A stretch of DNA of 64,000 bases from positions 62,001-126,000 of IMG/VR virus record IMGVR_UViG_3300031952_000001; one strand, 5' to 3'. Shown here in pieces: positions 2 through 55,038 of the stretch. The notes under the pieces are model-generated. The model saw only the letters and a program-made list of their open reading frames with translations. It did not search any database and was not told where the DNA came from. How positions within the stretch are numbered: position 1 is the stretch's first letter; every line of letters begins with the position of its first letter. A program made the position numbers and the translations under genes.

Positions 2-1462
2 TTCAACCGGCCGGACGGCAGCACGGGTTTCGCTTCGGTACTCTGCCCCCTCGGCACCAACAAGTACCTTCAGGAGTCCTTGGGACGCGGTCCGTTGTTC
101 GAGCAGCCCGTGCGTTGCGCCCACTGCGAGGAGTCGCAGCGTCAGTGGGATCTCTTCAACGCCCGGTGGGAGGCTCTCGGGATCGACAAGAAGGCTCTCT
201 CGTCGGACGGCTACCGGGACATGTGCACGCGGGATCCTGTCTTGGCGGTGACGAAGAGGGCTGCGAAAGACATCGGAGCTTGGGACAAGTATTTCTTGGC
301 GATTTTCGACCACGACAAGTTCGTGGGGGCGCGTCCCTTGGGTGAGGGCGACGATCCGGCCACGCTGCACCAGGCGTGGTTCGCTCCGAAGTCGGTGCAC
401 TCGAAGCTGCTCCGGCTGTTCGATGGCGGGGCTCAGTCTGGTGGGGCTCCGCAAGGACTTCGGTTCTTCGAGAACACTCAGGGCGGATTCCCGATCATCT
501 CCATCGTGAAGGACACGAGCAAGTGCAAGAAGAACAACCTGCGGGACACGGAGTACGATGCCGTGTTCAACAATCGGTTCTTCCAGTACCCGCCCGAGTG
601 GCTCGCGTACATCCAGAACTACGCCGCGTTGGTCGATCCGACGGAGACCCTGGTTCACCTTGTCACCTACGAGGAAGGGCTCCACTACGTCAGCCAGACG
701 AAGTCCTCGGGGAACGACTACCAGCAGGCGCAGCAGCAGATGACCGGCGGGGCAGCCCCTGGTGGGATGCCTCCGGGGATGGTCGGGGCCCCACAGGGAC
801 AGCCCCCGTATGGCGCTCCTCCGGGCAGCCCTCCGGCAGCCGGTTGGGCGGGCGCGACGGGGTACCCTCCGGTCGGGAACGCCGGCCAGATGCCCATGAT
901 GCCTCCTCCGGGAATGCCCGCTGGTCTGCCCCCCGGTGCGAACCCTCTGGGGGCTCCTCCGGGACAGCCTCCGATGGGACAGCCTCAGTACGGCCAGGCC
1001 CAGCCCCCGGCGCAGCAGATGCCCTACCAGGCCCCTCCGGGCCAGGCTCCTGGGCCGGCTCCGTACCCGGGCATGGCTCCGGTTCAGCAGGCTCCGGCTC
1101 CGCAGTATCCGGCGCAGCAGCAGTACAACCCAGCTCCTGGGCAGATGCCCCAGGGAATGCCTCCAGGAGCGCCCCCAGCGGCTCAGCAGCCTCCGCAGCA
1201 GTACGGGCAGCCCCAAGGTCAGATGCCCCCGGGGACGCCCCCCATGGTCGGTGGAGCCCCTCCGCAGGGGATGCCTCCGATGGCTCCGCCGCCCCAGCAG
1301 TCGTACGGTGGGGCTCCGGTGCCGAATCAGCCGCCGGCCGTTCCCCCTCCGGGCACGGTTCCGCCGATTGGGGTGGTGCCCGGCTTCGCTCCGCCGCCGC
1401 CCGACAGGGCTCCGACGCCACCCGCTGAGGGTGCTGGTGGTCCGCCGATGCGGCAATGGTAG
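2..1462 (+). CDS. 5'-truncated protein, possibly gp32-like ssDNA-binding protein, with a long Pro/Gly/Gln/Met-rich C-terminal tail
   Basis: Frame is open from the window start. A globular N-terminal part with Cys/His residues is followed by about 250 aa of low complexity. It lies directly upstream of recA. The SSB call rests mainly on context. Confidence 0.4.
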
Positions 1463-3795
1463 GAAGGGGGCCTCTCGTGGTGAAGGACAAAGAGAAGAAG
1501 GCCGCGGAATCTGTGGTCGAGCCGGCAGTGGACATTCTCCGCAAGATCCAGGCGGAGAAGGAAAGCCAGGTGTACGGGATCCAGATGCTGGAGGGCACGA
1601 AGATCGAAAACGTGCCACGGTCTTCTTCCGGCATCTTGAGCGTCGACATCGCTCTGGGGGGTGGGTATCCCTTGGGTCGTGTCGTTGAGATCTACGGATC
1701 TGAGGCCTCCGGGAAAACGACCCTCACCCTTCATGCCATCGCAGAGGTGAATCGCAAGGGTGGGACCGCGGCGATCATCGATCTGGAGAACGCCTTGGTC
1801 CCTGCGTACGGGAAGGTGCTGGGTGTCGACTGGTCGAAGACCTTGATCTCGCAACCCGATAACGCAGAGGTCGCGCTGAACCTGGTCGAGCACCTTTGCG
1901 GCCACATGAAGTCGGGCGACATGATCGTCGTGGATTCGGTGGCTGCGCTCACCCCCGAGGCTGAGATGAGCGGGGAGATGGGGGACTCGCACATGGGTCT
2001 CCAGGCGCGGCTCATGAGCCAGGCGCTGCGGAAGCTGACGCACATCGTTTCCACCTCTGGAATCATCCTGATCTTCATCAACCAGATTCGTTGTCTCCCC
2101 TTGGATTCGTTGATATTGCGCAATGGCGCTCTTTCCCGTTTGAAGGATCTTCGGATGGGTGACGTAGTACCCTACTGTTGTGAGTCCAGCACTACCGTTC
2201 AAGGTCTTCACATCGCCGGAGTTGTTCCCGGCAAGAAGTTACAGCCAAAGAATTGCCCACCTTTTAGTCTCAGTAACTTGCATTGGCAGCCTGTCGTGGA
2301 TTGTAGGGGGCAGGTTATTAACAAGCAAGGTTCCGACATTGCAGTGGGTGATTGGCTTATTCAGCCCCTCTTGAAGAAGAGCCAGCAACTTTCTGATGCT
2401 GCCGGCTATATCGACCTTTCCGATGTGATTCAGTCGGTGGGAGAGGCGTTGCCGTCTAACGCTGCCAAAGTGCAGCTTCCAAGAATTCTTGATGAAGACC
2501 TGGCATTCTTCCTTGGGTGTTGTTACTCAGACGGAAACTTATATCAGGATGTCGATAACAGCGACTATCGTATGCAATTTACAGAGAACAGTGTTGATCG
2601 TCACACTCTGATAAAAGACTCCTGTGAGAAAGTATTTCCAGGGCTGTCTTTTGTCTCTGAGAACAAGGTGGCTCTTTACGGGAAGGCTATTTTTCTATTT
2701 CTTAAAGGTCTTGGTTGCAAAGAGCACGGGTCTGAGAAAATCATTCCAGAAAGGATACTACAATCTCGGCGCAGCGTCGTTAGGGAGTTCTTGCGTGGTT
2801 CTTTGTTTGATTCTCATGGGTTCGATAGCCATGGTTTTATTTTTACGCATGAGAATCTTGAAGCGGCTTATGAGTTTTCTAAGGTTCTGTATTACTTTGG
2901 AGTTTCTGCGGATGTTCGTGATGGGTATCTCTACATCACCGGAGCCGATGCTTTGACTTTTTCTGAAATTATAGGGTTTTCTGAACAATATAAACTAAAG
3001 AAGTCTAAGTTGTTTATTGAGACCCCCAATGCTCGCGGTAAGTATGATGTCGTGCCTTTTGAACTTTCAGAGGCCATCTTCAAGTTGATAAAGACCCTGG
3101 GGGTAAAGGGTATCTCTGGTATCCCCTATTACAATTCTTTCAAGATGTGCTTATTCAAGAGGCTTAACACTTCCAGGTTAGGGTTGATCTCGTTTTTGCG
3201 GGAGATTCAAGAGAGTCCGACGCCGTACTCTGAAATCCAGAACTTTTTGGATTTACTTAGTGATAACAGATTCTACCAGATTGAGAGCTTGGAGGATACT
3301 GAGTTCGATGCTCTGGATGTAGAGACTGGTTCAGGTCTTTTTATATCGGATAGATTCTTGACGCATAATAGCAAGATTGGTGTAGTGTTCGGCAACCCAG
3401 AGGTAACTACCGGAGGGAACGCGCTCAAGTTCTACGCCTCTCAGCGCATCGAAGTGCGTGGCGGCACCAAGCTCAAAGGCGTCGGGGAGGGCTCTCCTCC
3501 GGTGGGCCAGATCACACACATCAAGGTGGTGAAGAACAAGGTCTCTATGCCGTTCAGGAACACCGATGTGGATTTGTACTACGGCTGGGGTTTCCTCCCG
3601 GCAGCGGACATCTTCGTGACCGGGAAGCGCTACGGTGTCATCGAGGCATCCGGATCCTGGTACTCGTTCAACGGTGAGCGCCTGGGGAACGGAGAGGTCG
3701 CTGCGAAGACATTCCTCGGTCAGAACAAGGAGATGCAGGAAGCCATCAAGAAAGCGGTCCTGGAGAAGGAAAATGCACCCGCAACCGCAGGTTGA
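1456..3795 (+). CDS. recA: RecA recombinase interrupted by an intein
   Basis: Walker [10 protein letters not shown], Walker [63 protein letters not shown]. Confidence 0.97.
2092..3369 (+). mobile_element. Intein with LAGLIDADG homing endonuclease (426 aa) in RecA
   Basis: Starts CLPLDS and ends FLTHN with a +1 Ser. LAGLIDADG-like blocks [10 protein letters not shown] and [14 protein letters not shown] is visibly more AT-rich than the exteins. Confidence 0.93.
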
Positions 3796-34408: not shown

Positions 34409-35593
34409 ATGATCCGCACCTGCAAAGTGAAGCTCGGTCGTGCGCCAAAACAGGAGGCGAAGCTCACTTACGTTTTGGGTCTCTGTTGTGACCTCTACAA
34501 CGCAGCTCTCCAGCAGCGACGGGATGCCTGGGCTAAGCAGAAGGTCTCGCTTTCGTACTATGCGCAGACCAAGGAACTCACTCAGCTCCGTGCAGATGAT
34601 GAGGAGTACCGGCGGCTGCCGGCTCAGATGACTCGCATGACGTCACTATACCGCGTAGATAGGGCCTTTCAGGGGTTTTGCGGACGGTGTAGACGCGGTG
34701 AGAATCCCGGCTTCCCTCGGTTCCGCAGCCGAGATCGTTTCTCTACTTTGATGTTCTCTACGCAGGATTGGCGCATCAAGGGCAAGAGCCTGATATTGAA
34801 GAACGATGCAGATCCTATTGTCTTGCAAATGCGTAACACGATTCATCATGAGGGCCAGATCAAAGGTCTTCGTGTTGTCCGAAGTGCAACGCGATGGTGG
34901 GCGCATTTTCTTGTGGATGTAGGCCCTACCCCAGCTGTAAAGAAGTCCGATCACGGCGTCGGGATCGACGTTGGTCTTCGAACTTTCGCGACTCTGTCCG
35001 ACGGTAACGTCGTCGAACATCCGCGGTTCTTGAAGCAGAGCCTGGAGCAGCTGAAGTCGGTCCAGCAGGAGCTGAGCCGGAAGAAGAGGGGCTCCAAGAA
35101 CCGCGCGAAGGCGAAGCTCGTCGTCGCGCGGGTACACGAGAAGATCGCGAATCGTCGTCGAGACTTCGTACATCAGACCGTGTCCTCCTTGGTGAAGAAG
35201 TACGACGGGTTTGCGCTGGAGAAGCTCGACGTTTGCGCCATGACAAGCACGGAGCGCAAAGTCGAGGGTTTGGACAAGAAGCAATCTCGTGGTCTCCGAA
35301 GGGGGATCATGGACTCTGGCTGGTCTCTGTTCGGTGCACACCTGGCCTCCAAAGCGGAAGAAGCTGGGCTGCCGGTTGTGCACGTCGATCCGAAAGGCAC
35401 TTCGCAGAGATGTTCGGCTTGCGGAACCATAGTGCGAAAAACACTTCGGGACCGTGTGCACGAATGCTTTGCCTGTGGTCTCGTGCTGGATCGGGATGAG
35501 AACGCAGCCAGGAACATCTACGACCTGGGGCTCAGGTCGGCGTCCGGAAGCGCAGCAACAGCTAGTTGTGCTGAAGGCGCGGAGGTTCTGTGA
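34409..35593 (+). CDS. tnpB: TnpB RNA-guided endonuclease (IS200/IS605 family), no TnpA
   Basis: LYNAAL, PRFRS, RuvC residues GIDVG, FALEKL and DRDENAARNI, zinc finger CSAC/CFAC. Confidence 0.93.
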   Translation: MIRTCKVKLGRAPKQEAKLTYVLGLCCDLYNAALQQRRDAWAKQKVSLSYYAQTKELTQLRADDEEYRRLPAQMTRMTSLYRVDRAFQGFCGRCRRGENPGFPRFRSRDRFSTLMFSTQDWRIKGKSLILKNDADPIVLQMRNTIHHEGQIKGLRVVRSATRWWAHFLVDVGPTPAVKKSDHGVGIDVGLRTFATLSDGNVVEHPRFLKQSLEQLKSVQQELSRKKRGSKNRAKAKLVVARVHEKIANRRRDFVHQTVSSLVKKYDGFALEKLDVCAMTSTERKVEGLDKKQSRGLRRGIMDSGWSLFGAHLASKAEEAGLPVVHVDPKGTSQRCSACGTIVRKTLRDRVHECFACGLVLDRDENAARNIYDLGLRSASGSAATASCAEGAEVL

Positions 35594-39344: not shown

Positions 39345-39713
39345 GGGCCGGAAAGGTTTCGACAGCGGATGTGACGGTGTTCACTGCGTGTACCGCTTGT
39401 AAGTCAGCGGTTTAAAACGACTTTCAACAGACAAATGCCGATGCAGATGTCATCCCCTTCCCGAAGATGGCCGTTCCGTCGCTCCAGCGAGAGGCGGCTT
39501 AGGGAACGTCGGACGTGCGAGGTGCTCGTAACTCGCACGGCCGGCGCAATTCGAGACGAGCAACCCACGGTTTGACAGGTCGCACCGAGAAGCAGCCTGG
39601 ACCCTGGGAGTGCAGTCGTGCGGCACTCTCTGAGACCTTCAGCGCGACCACACACGTAACGAAGTGAACGCTCGACTCTACTGGACGGGGTTTCGATACC
39701 CCCCGGTCCACCA
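39345..39713 (+). ncRNA. ssrA: tmRNA (transfer-messenger RNA)
   Basis: 5' GGGCCGGAAAGGTTTCGAC; 3' GACGGGGTTTCGATACCCC-CCGGTCC-ACCA; acceptor stem with G3.U wobble; tag ORF 39437-39502 reads ADADVIPFPKMAVPSLQREAA*. Confidence 0.92.
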
Positions 39714-40192: not shown

Positions 40193-40264
40193 TGCGGGGT
40201 GGTCAAGTGGCAAGACACCAGGTTCATACCCTGGAGACCGTGGGTTCGAATCCCATCCCCGCTA
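40193..40264 (+). tRNA. tRNA-Met (CAT), 1:72 mismatch
   Basis: Anticodon arm CCAGG-TTCATAC-CCTGG; T arm GTGGG-TTCGAAT-CCCAT; CCA not encoded. Confidence 0.9.
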
Positions 40265-40267
40265 CTA

Positions 40268-40433: not shown

Positions 40434-41045
40434 ATGGTGCATTCTCTACGAGAACAGGCCGTCACCCTTCGAGAGAAGGGTCTTTCTTATTCCGAGATAA
40501 GAGATCGTCTAGGCATCGCAAGAAGTACCCTTAGCTACATGCTGAAAGATATTGTTCTTACGGAAAAACAGAAGAAACGATTAGAAAAGAAGAAGAAAGA
40601 CGGACAGAAAGTTTTGCGGGCTTGGTCCGAGACTCAACCTCCAGAGGTCCTAGCAGCTGTTAGCTCCCGTGGAGGGAAAGTGTGCCAGGAGCGTCATTCG
40701 GAGGCTCTTCGTAAGCACTTGTCCTTGGGTTGGAAGGCTGCCATGCTGACTTATCGAAAGGATGAGCTGCCTATTAAAATTTCTTTAGAAAAAATCTATA
40801 ATAGAGTTTTTTCCAAAGAACTGATAGGTAGGCGGGCCATAGACTTCGCATGTAAAGATCTTCTTATAGAACACACATCAGACCCCACCCACGGAGTGTT
40901 TGATCTCGTTAGGAGGTTTGAAGACGTTGTTTCTGATCCTCGCAAGAAGATAGCCTATCTGGATGTTTCCAAAATAGGTCCTTCTACTAGGAAACGGTTG
41001 GAGAACCTCGGCGTCCTGGTTTTAGATTTTCGGGCACTGGCCTAA
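40434..41045 (+). CDS. HTH plus PD-(D/E)xK-like putative homing endonuclease
   Basis: LREKGLSYSEIRDRLGIARSTLS; IDFACKDLLIE; AT-rich; stop codon lies inside tRNA-Pro. Confidence 0.5.
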   Translation: MVHSLREQAVTLREKGLSYSEIRDRLGIARSTLSYMLKDIVLTEKQKKRLEKKKKDGQKVLRAWSETQPPEVLAAVSSRGGKVCQERHSEALRKHLSLGWKAAMLTYRKDELPIKISLEKIYNRVFSKELIGRRAIDFACKDLLIEHTSDPTHGVFDLVRRFEDVVSDPRKKIAYLDVSKIGPSTRKRLENLGVLVLDFRALA

Positions 41046-41104
41046 CCTGGTAAGGCACATGCTTTGGGTGCATGGGATTCAGGGTTCAAATCCCTGGTGT
41101 CCGA
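41031..41104 (+). tRNA. tRNA-Pro (TGG)
   Basis: Acceptor CGGGCAC/GTGTCCG; anticodon arm CATGC-TTTGGGT-GCATG; T arm CAGGG-TTCAAAT-CCCTG. Confidence 0.93.
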
Positions 41105-41136
41105 CCCAAATGATCTCAAACCGCTCATTTTCCCTC

Positions 41137-53697: not shown

Positions 53698-53907
53698 TCA
53701 GGAGTTCCTGTGCCGGGTAGCGTTGTACTCCTCCCAAGCGGTCGAGAATTCTGAGTAGTTTTCCCAGACTGCGTAGAGGTGGCCGCACTTGGGGCAGAAC
53801 TTGTTCTGATCTTCGGGCTTGGTCCAGAAAGACGAGTGCGGACCCGGGTGATCTTCCCAATGGTATCCGCAACTTAGACAGCGGAGCTTGGCGAGCTTCT
53901 CCTTCAA
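53698..53907 (-). CDS. small zinc-ribbon protein
   Basis: CLSC ... CPKC; SD GGAGG before TTG. Confidence 0.65.
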   Translation of the reverse strand: MKEKLAKLRCLSCGYHWEDHPGPHSSFWTKPEDQNKFCPKCGHLYAVWENYSEFSTAWEEYNATRHRNS

Positions 53908-53916
53908 GGACCTCCC

Positions 53917-54228
53917 TCAGTGCCCGTAATTGAAGCCGTACCTGAACCTTCGAATCTTGTCACCGTCTTCGTGGTCTGTGAACGTGAACTCACGTCCAAA
54001 GCTGCCTCAACAGCCCTCGGCGGCGATCTCCTTGTAGGCCTCCATCTCTTTCTCGTTCCCCACCTCCGCGAGGCGAAAGTGGCTGGTGCACGCATAGCCC
54101 TCCCGGTGGACCTTGGCGATCCGGGCGGTTAAGAAGTCCGCGAGCTTTGGGTTCTTGTACCGCTTGAAGATCCACTCCCAGGTGGGACCGAGGTAGGAGT
54201 CCCGGTCGAAGCTCTCCTTGCGGCTCAT
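53917..54228 (-). CDS. candidate selenoprotein (UGA at 54009-54007 read as Sec; ...AEGC-U-GSF...GFNYGH)
   Basis: Reading through the TGA gives 29 more sense codons ending at the next gene's SD; a SECIS-like hairpin follows the UGA. Confidence 0.65.
53976..54001 (-). promoter_or_regulatory. bacterial SECIS-like hairpin
   Basis: mRNA UGA-GGCAGCUUU-GGACGUG-AGUU-CACGUUC: 7-bp stem, apical loop 16 nt after the UGA, G at loop position 2. Confidence 0.55.
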
Positions 54229-54231
54229 GGT

Positions 54232-54426
54232 TTAGACCTTCTCATCGCCGGGAACCGCCACGCCCGCCTTGATGATCTCCAGGCAACGTTCGTAGGTGCA
54301 CCTCTGGAGTCCGCAACAGAACGTGCACCAAGGGTTCCTCGAAACCTCCTTGGATCTGTAGCGGCAGGTCTTGGCCTCTTTCCGCCAGTCCAGGACAGCC
54401 TTGCCGTACTTTCGTTTCGGGATCAT
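54232..54426 (-). CDS. small Cys-rich protein
   Basis: Operon-coupled ORF. Confidence 0.55.
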   Translation of the reverse strand: MIPKRKYGKAVLDWRKEAKTCRYRSKEVSRNPWCTFCCGLQRCTYERCLEIIKAGVAVPGDEKV

Positions 54427-54429
54427 CGT

Positions 54430-55038
54430 TCACCTCACTTGGCCCCTGCCGGTACCGTTGCAGTCGGGGCAGGTCGTGTACCCCGGAGTCACGCAGCATT
54501 CGATCCCCGGGAGAGATGCTCCTTGCGCCCCGTAGGCCTGTCCGCTTCCCTTGCATCGAGGACAGCTCCGGTAGTAGACGTCGAGGTCCTCATCGCCCAG
54601 CTCTTCCCGTAGCCGCGCGTTTTCGGTTTCCAGGGAGGCCAGTGACTTCTCACCGAGCCGAGCTGCCGCCTGGAGCGCCTCGATTCGGGATTCCCGGAGA
54701 CGCATTCCCGCTATGGCAGAATTGAGTTCTCTTTGGGCGAGTTCCAGAGAGAGGCTGATCTCTGCCGTCATCGCACGCGCAGCGGCGAGGACGTGCTCCG
54801 CAGCCTCACCGATAGTCTCGTTGTCGTCCGCCGCCAGCGCAGACCGGGCTTCCTCGATCTGCGTTTTGCAAGCCATGAGGTCATCGAAGACGAGGTCCCG
54901 CTCCTCTTGGATCTGCTTGATCTCGGCCTTGTACTGGGCCTCGATCTCGTGGATCGCGATCCACACCCGACCTTGAGGGACGGTTGTGCCGTACAGAAGA
55001 TCCGTGATCCTGTTTCTGATCTCGTTGAGGTCCATCAT
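54430..55038 (-). CDS. coiled-coil protein with a C-terminal DnaJ-type zinc finger
   Basis: CPRCKGSG, CPDCNGTG. Confidence 0.7.
   Translation of the reverse strand: MMDLNEIRNRITDLLYGTTVPQGRVWIAIHEIEAQYKAEIKQIQEERDLVFDDLMACKTQIEEARSALAADDNETIGEAAEHVLAAARAMTAEISLSLELAQRELNSAIAGMRLRESRIEALQAAARLGEKSLASLETENARLREELGDEDLDVYYRSCPRCKGSGQAYGAQGASLPGIECCVTPGYTTCPDCNGTGRGQVR

Follow-up and report, generated by a model that had tools for sequence, protein, structure and literature searches.

Does the TGA triplet that follows the 73rd codon of a small gene in an uncultured 212-kb sediment phage terminate translation, or is it read as selenocysteine (Sec)? The gene lies in the 64-kb window, the whole stretch of 64,000 nucleotides that was analysed, which is part of a 211,982-bp contig from a sediment metagenome also present in IMG/VR. 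On the minus strand an ATG at 54228 opens a 73-codon ORF (54228-54010) ending KEIAAEGC, with TGT at 54012-54010, which is followed by TGA at 54009-54007, by 29 in-frame sense codons, GSFGREFTFTDHEDGDKIRRFRYGFNYGH (54006-53920), and by a second TGA at 53919-53917. The complete gene as proposed (53917-54228) therefore comprises 103 sense positions, with UGA at codon 74, plus the terminal TGA. The Shine-Dalgarno-like GGGAGG at 53916-53911 and the TTG start, at 53907, of a 69-aa zinc-ribbon-like protein (53698-53907, minus strand) come directly after, while upstream a 64-aa Cys-rich small protein (54232-54426, minus strand) has its stop 3 nt before the ATG. Without the extension there is a 99-nt unassigned gap. 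Downstream of the UGA the mRNA folds as UGGACGUG-AGUU-CACGUUCA (53998-53979), with the loop at 53990-53987, 16 nt between the UGA and the loop, G at loop position 2 followed by U, and an energy of −9.2 kcal/mol. An earlier note, made from the sequence alone, had described this locus as a candidate phage-encoded selenoprotein gene with an in-frame UGA in a Gly-Cys-Sec-Gly context and a SECIS-like hairpin, and everything that it observed is present. An open 29-codon frame is not in itself more than chance would give, but the comparative evidence described below is far beyond chance and shows that the UGA very probably encodes Sec.

The simplest alternative, that the stop is real and the 29 codons are a decaying remnant, or that the TGA is a nonsense mutation or an assembly error, draws on the fact that all gene callers report a 73-aa protein. 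The TGA, however, is present in 14 independent contigs, from different samples and from JGI, ENA and Logan assemblies, that encode the identical 73-aa ORF, and contigs of three independent runs placed on the window show many differences elsewhere but none at 54007-54009. A protein search with the 73-aa piece found homologues that are 82% (P0002) and 73% (P0003) identical and are also called as exactly 73 aa; their DNA displays TGA at the same codon, then 29 codons that translate to a conserved peptide (for example GVVEREFTFTDHEDGGKVRRFKYGFNHGH), and a stop at the same position. The same arrangement is found in two further variants, the contigs L014, at 93% identity, and L040 (protein P0037). 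In total, six variants of this phage clade (73-100% identical in four of them; identity was not measured for the contigs L007 and L040) and two distant lineages (contigs L018 and L022, about 42% identical) retain TGA at the same codon together with the downstream frame, length and motif. The UGA is thus conserved in nine distinct sequences from three deep lineages (the window, L007, L014, L001, L004, L040, L018 and L022). The note had stated that homologues ending at the UGA, or a TGA confined to this genome, would count against its reading, and neither was observed. A genuine stop with a remnant or an error behind it is very unlikely, being already contradicted by these comparisons.

The extension evolves as coding sequence. 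Across five lineages 20 of its 29 residues are invariant, and synonymous and non-synonymous codon differences occur in similar proportions before and after the UGA. Nucleotide identity to relatives is 0.80-1.00 before the UGA and 0.79-0.95 after it, and falls to 0.13-0.23 immediately after the second stop in lineages with a different downstream gene; the contig of one run also breaks exactly at 53919. These data show that the mosaic boundary, and hence the end of the evolutionary unit, lies after the second stop and not the first. That second stop (53919-53917) is TGA in the window, L014 and L040, and TAG in L001, L004 and L007.

Alignment of Cys to the UGA in homologues had been put forward by the note as a test of its reading, and the homologues found here satisfy it. 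An exhaustive HMMER search of 1.84 billion representative proteins, using the profile of the N-terminal pieces, returned full-length proteins of 100-109 aa (P0004 and P0008-P0012) that read GCCG (DCCD in P0004) and end in GFNYGH, and two 74-aa ‘truncated' proteins, P0006 and P0007, that end in GC. The contigs of the latter two, from phages of 50% and 42% G+C that share about 42% identity with the window protein, again read GC-TGA-G(F/S)...FTD...GFNYGH-stop. Widening the family gave 27 alignable Cys forms, in which R52, C73, C74, G98, G102 and H103 are invariant and G72, G75, D78 and N100 nearly so; the window gene carries R52, C73, U74, G98, N100, G102 and H103. All 27 have Cys-Cys where the UGA genes have Cys-UGA, as do five further distinct sequences read from eight IMG/VR contigs, some of which are the C-terminal domain of larger proteins. 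An hhalign comparison places the N-terminal piece of the window protein on positions 1-73 of the family profile (E 4.5e-22) and the 29-aa piece on positions 76-98 (E 7e-11), leaving exactly the Cys-Gly positions 74-75 for UGA-GGC. The small phage proteins with GCCG...GFNYGH that the note had named as the would-be Cys homologues do exist. Several UGA-bearing sequences, Cys in the homologues and conservation past the UGA together form the standard comparative signature of a selenoprotein gene (criteria as used in PMC1088965). Other searches for relatives were unproductive. DNA searches of GenBank phages gave no match to the window locus, L018 or L022; a protein-pattern search of GTDB genomes found no relative and a Sec-specific DNA pattern only a chance hit (L031); and Sec-specific patterns in IMG/VR returned only the two clade contigs, chance hits (L025 and L026) and Cys forms in which TGAGG lies out of frame (L032-L039).

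A second rival is that the UGA is read by a phage-encoded suppressor tRNA or under a reassigned code, as Trp or Gly, used by the phage or its host. Some large phages recode stop codons and carry suppressor tRNAs, and this phage carries tRNAs and a tmRNA. In a crude GC3-based call of 95 genes in the window, however, 40 end in TGA, 43 in TAG and 12 in TAA, the TGA stops often overlap the start of the next gene, and genes of 700-1,350 codons contain no in-frame TGA. No other TGA-terminated gene has a coding-like in-frame continuation that fills a gap. TGA is also a common stop in L004 and the commonest in L018 and L022. No tRNA with anticodon UCA was found in the window, although two thirds of the phage genome were not examined, and Trp or Gly would in any case replace an invariant Cys. 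The criteria for a genome in which UGA is reassigned are not fulfilled in the window or in the relatives examined, and this rival is very unlikely. As UGA is an ordinary stop that also terminates this same gene, the recoding is local and context-dependent.

The bacterial SECIS model given in a 2026 review (PMC13188914) requires an apical loop of 3-9 nt, a stem of 4-16 bp, G in the first two loop positions, usually followed by G or U, 16-37 nt between the UGA and the loop, and a free energy of −7.5 kcal/mol or lower. All six Sec sequences of the window clade fit it strictly, with a 7-8 bp stem, the loop AGUU, a spacing of 16 nt and energies of −7.6 to −9.2 kcal/mol. The note had named an unconserved hairpin as a ground for rejecting its proposal, but the seven core pairs form in all seven clade sequences, the three variable 5′-arm positions showing one-sided wobble changes only between G.U, A-U and C-G/U.G. 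The four hairpin codons with invariant amino acids are codon-invariant in 4 of 4 cases, compared with 15 of 37 elsewhere (p=0.04). The hairpin alone is only moderately unusual, as one passing the strict model occurs in 21 of 2,000 dinucleotide shuffles (1%), after 4 of the 39 other TGA stops in this GC-rich window (about 10%) and in 0 of 8 Cys-form controls. There is no two-sided compensatory change in the core pairs, column shuffles score as high as the real alignment, the fold z-scores (−0.4 to −1.6) are unremarkable, and an Rfam search of the locus by E-value returned no SECIS family. The hairpin is built from conserved codons (R-E-F-T-F) and persists, weakened to −5.7 kcal/mol, in the Cys form L027, and it could therefore be partly a by-product of the protein sequence. 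A small alternative hairpin, GGCUGU-UGAG-GCAGCU, which puts the UGA in its loop, was rejected as it is not conserved in L004. Of the two distant UGA lineages, L018 has no hairpin below −4 kcal/mol, while L022 has a −9.5 kcal/mol hairpin 20 nt downstream but with G at loop position 3. Whether a consensus SECIS is a property of these UGA genes is thus left undecided by the observations. BSepDB, however, reports that 12.6% of bacterial selenoprotein entries lack a canonical element (PMC13326102), so the distant lineages weaken the case but do not refute it.

The window encodes a tmRNA, tRNA-Met and tRNA-Pro, but ARAGORN and Rfam found no tRNA-Sec in it, and a Pfam search of its 86 predicted proteins of at least 70 aa found no SelA, SelB or SelD, in agreement with the note's statement that no sel gene lies in the window. 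The remaining 148 kb of the phage were not searched and, as the runs are all sediment metagenomes from which no host was identified, the presence of selA, selB, selC and selD in the translating cell was not examined. This absence, together with the lack of covariation in the hairpin and of any SECIS-like structure in L018, speaks for a third rival, programmed or leaky read-through by an ordinary near-cognate tRNA (Trp, Cys or Arg), which would give a major 73-aa and a minor 103-aa product without selenium. A conserved UGA with a conserved extension is also the signature of programmed read-through. Against this view, Trp or Arg would replace a residue that is Cys in all 27 aligned homologues and the five further sequences, and the 73-aa product, which lacks two of the three β-strands and four invariant residues, is unlikely to be the main functional form. 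Bacterial UGA read-through is mainly by tRNA-Trp. A UGA paired with Cys in homologues is the accepted criterion for Sec (PMC1088965). Ordinary read-through is therefore considered unlikely, though less so than the other two rivals.

In a maximum-likelihood tree the window clade is (L004,(P0004-Cys,(L001,(L014,(window,L007))))), with support 96/99, while L018 and L022 pair together with support 94/65. The Cys form P0004 is thus nested inside the Sec clade, and the tree requires at least two Sec/Cys changes. The nested Cys form differs by TGA to TGT, has DCCD in place of GCUG and retains the weakened hairpin, which fits a Sec-to-Cys reversion.

The protein belongs to an uncharacterised family, seen so far only in phage contigs, with the core motif DNFRVAE..Y..G-C-C-G-F.D...GFNYGH-COOH. 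Searches of Pfam, NCBIfam, PDB sequence profiles and the ESM Atlas gave no informative hit, and there is a weak to moderate match to phrog_33577, of unknown function (E 8.6e-4 for the N-terminal piece and 1.3e-7 for the closest Cys form). Cys forms with the GCCG...G[FC]N[YF]GH core occur in Pseudomonas phages PPSC2 and UNO-G1W1, Edwardsiella phage vB_EpM_ZHS and Erythrobacter phage XM05; all are annotated as hypothetical and none carries the UGA. An AlphaFold2 model of the closest Cys homologue, built with the family alignment, is confident (pLDDT 89) and displays an α-α-β-α-β-β fold, in which the 73-aa piece corresponds to two helices, the first strand and a helix ending in Gly-Cys, and the 29-codon extension to the β2-β3 hairpin, carrying the conserved G, N, G and H. 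Foldseek found no significant PDB match, and the only match in BFVD is the PPSC2 family member. The Cys-Cys/Sec pair lies at the junction of helix 3 and strand 2, and as strand 2 pairs with strand 3, the pair should sit beside the invariant C-terminal Gly-His; this is inferred from the secondary-structure topology rather than from model coordinates. The genomic neighbours are small, often Cys-rich or zinc-ribbon proteins, and in other phages include a Lar-like restriction-alleviation protein, a ProQ-C-like protein, a DNA methylase and a LexA-like repressor, which suggests an early or accessory region but no specific function.

As the note had stated for the mammalian enzyme, GCUG is the active-site motif of animal thioredoxin reductase (PMC8914392), where, as in TGR, the vicinal Cys-Sec can form a selenenylsulfide. 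In the phage protein, by contrast, the tetrapeptide is internal, at residues 72-75 of 103 and at a helix-to-strand junction, and is not at the penultimate position of a flexible tail; there is no flavoprotein domain and no sequence or fold relationship. The protein is therefore not a thioredoxin reductase of the high-molecular-weight type, and the resemblance, which is one of motif only, is a lead for the chemistry and not evidence of membership. The most likely chemistry, by inference only, is a redox-active Cys-Sec selenenylsulfide/selenolthiol centre, with a metal-binding site made of Cys, Sec, His and Asp as the alternative.

The gene resembles bacterial selenoprotein genes with a SECIS hairpin in the coding region just after the UGA, such as formate dehydrogenase fdhF and the families catalogued in BSepDB (PMC13326102), in its UGA paired with Cys in homologues, its coding conservation past the UGA and, in the window clade, its small stem-loop. 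It differs in being carried by a phage, in having no Sec machinery beside it in the window and in that two of the three lineages lack a canonical SECIS. The known viral selenoproteins are the glutathione peroxidases of two animal poxviruses, molluscum contagiosum virus and fowlpox virus (PMC8310308, PMC1802603), which also rely on the host's insertion machinery and, in fowlpox, have the SECIS within the coding region. Those are host-derived genes with eukaryotic SECIS elements, whereas this is a phage-specific family with a bacterial-type element whose Sec and Cys forms have interchanged within phage lineages. The note knew of no characterised phage selenoprotein family and had asked for a literature check. 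In the literature searched no paper contains phrases such as ‘phage selenoprotein', although it is not excluded that the family hides among unnamed families from marine metagenomes, such as the ‘hypothetical protein GOS_A/B' selenoproteins of PMC2398784, with which it was not compared. The reviews and databases of prokaryotic selenoproteomes that were read (2005-2026) do not mention phages, and the 2026 review and the BSepDB paper, which covers 111 families, mention neither phages nor viruses.

The note's interpretation is supported, as every computational test that it named came out in favour, with the reservations on covariation, the distant lineages and the host given above. What the analysis itself demonstrates is the conservation of the UGA, the continuation of frame, length, C-terminal motif and coding-type substitution past it, its alignment with an invariant Cys in more than 30 homologues, the normal use of UGA as a stop elsewhere in the phage and the retention throughout the clade of a hairpin that fits the bacterial consensus. 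That codon 74 encodes Sec in a phage-specific protein is, on this basis, very likely, although selenium incorporation was not assayed. The mechanism rests on inference: during infection the host's SelB carrying Sec-tRNA(Sec) would bind the hairpin on the phage mRNA and deliver Sec at the UGA, the phage depending on the host's selA, selB, selC and selD, as none is seen in the window. This borrowing of host machinery is the default inference and was not tested, nor was the hairpin tested functionally. When decoding fails, for example when selenium is scarce, a 73-residue fragment would result that is probably inactive. The mechanism is the known bacterial one, while the carrier, the family and the internal GCUG centre are, as far as can be told, new.

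A further reading, judged somewhat more likely than not, is that this is the first selenoprotein family of bacteriophages, in which an invariant vicinal Cys-Cys has become Cys-Sec in at least two or three phage lineages and has reverted to Cys at least once, and which is decoded by hijacking the host's SelB/tRNA-Sec system through a SECIS embedded in the phage mRNA. If so, Sec use would mark these phages as infecting selenium-utilising hosts, and expression of the full-length protein would depend on selenium supply. A phage-borne Sec gene would show that phages can exploit the host's recoding machinery, that a conserved Sec-UGA could serve as a host-range marker, because the host must carry selABCD, and that routine phage annotation systematically truncates such genes, every database entry for this gene being the 73-aa fragment. 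The recurrence of Gly-Cys-Sec-Gly, otherwise known from animal thioredoxin reductase, is a possible case of convergent selenium chemistry. The Sec/Cys pair also points to the catalytic residue of a widespread, wholly uncharacterised phage protein family, whose function, which is probably redox, thereby becomes testable.

The Sec gene, the gene in which the in-frame UGA is proposed to encode selenocysteine, is located in a run of small minus-strand genes that are rich in CxxC pairs (window 53698-53907, 54232-54426 and 54430-55038, all on the minus strand). The products of these genes gave weak zinc-ribbon-like hits against Pfam, and the 202-aa ORF in this group ends with CPRC...CPDC motifs. A mosaic breakpoint lies exactly after the second stop codon of the Sec gene (window 53917-53919 and just downstream; L007:3310 onward, where L007 is a contig carrying a variant of the gene from the same phage clade). 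The window and L007 are 100% and 95% identical within the gene and 23% identical after it. The zinc-ribbon gene at 53698-53907 is absent from L007-L009, L001 and L004, which are contigs bearing related loci. In L040 (529-858), a newly found Sec lineage, the gene is followed by an ORF that resembles the N-terminal DNA-binding part of a LexA-type repressor, although this resemblance was judged by eye only.

Elsewhere in the window a RecA-like ORF of 779 aa is encoded at 1456-3795 on the plus strand. The Pfam RecA domain was located at residues 39-212 and RecA_C at residues 719-771, and thus about 500 residues are inserted between the two, which may represent an intein or another inserted domain. 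A TnpB-type ORF, also on the plus strand (34409-35593), lies inside the phage genome and contains OrfB_IS605 (E 1e-29) and the Cas12f1-like TNB domain (E 7e-21). The phage also encodes a tmRNA (39345-39713, plus strand), which was identified with Rfam model RF00023 at 82 bits and for which ARAGORN gave the tag peptide ADADVIPFPKMAVPSLQREAA. The tmRNA lies next to tRNA-Met(CAT) and tRNA-Pro(TGG), at 40193-40265 and 41030-41108, respectively, both on the plus strand. A Pfam scan of a batch of 86 ORFs from the window, which were not individually located, revealed ThyX (E 2e-47), a Tad2-like anti-Thoeris domain (E 7e-21), DUF192, a GDSL lipase, DUF7168 and two metallophosphatases, while most of the ORFs were not assigned to any family.

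The GCCG...GFNYGH module also occurs as the C-terminal domain of larger phage proteins, ranging from 150 to more than 300 aa, in L035 and L037 (IMG/VR contigs of 168,874 and 129,634 bp) and in the proteins P0020, P0021, P0028 and P0031, the N-terminal parts of which have no Pfam match. In one Cys-form lineage the gene appears to be split into an N-terminal and a C-terminal ORF (proteins P0030, 49 aa, and P0027, 43 aa, from the same contigs). As the break is upstream of the CC pair, this is a different interruption from the UGA. The Cys form P0004, encoded by contig L027 (502-813), is nested inside the Sec clade, and has TGT in place of TGA and DCCD in place of GCUG. This gene keeps a weakened copy of the hairpin (GAGUGUG-AGUU-CACGUUC), and P0004 is an apparent Sec-to-Cys reversion.
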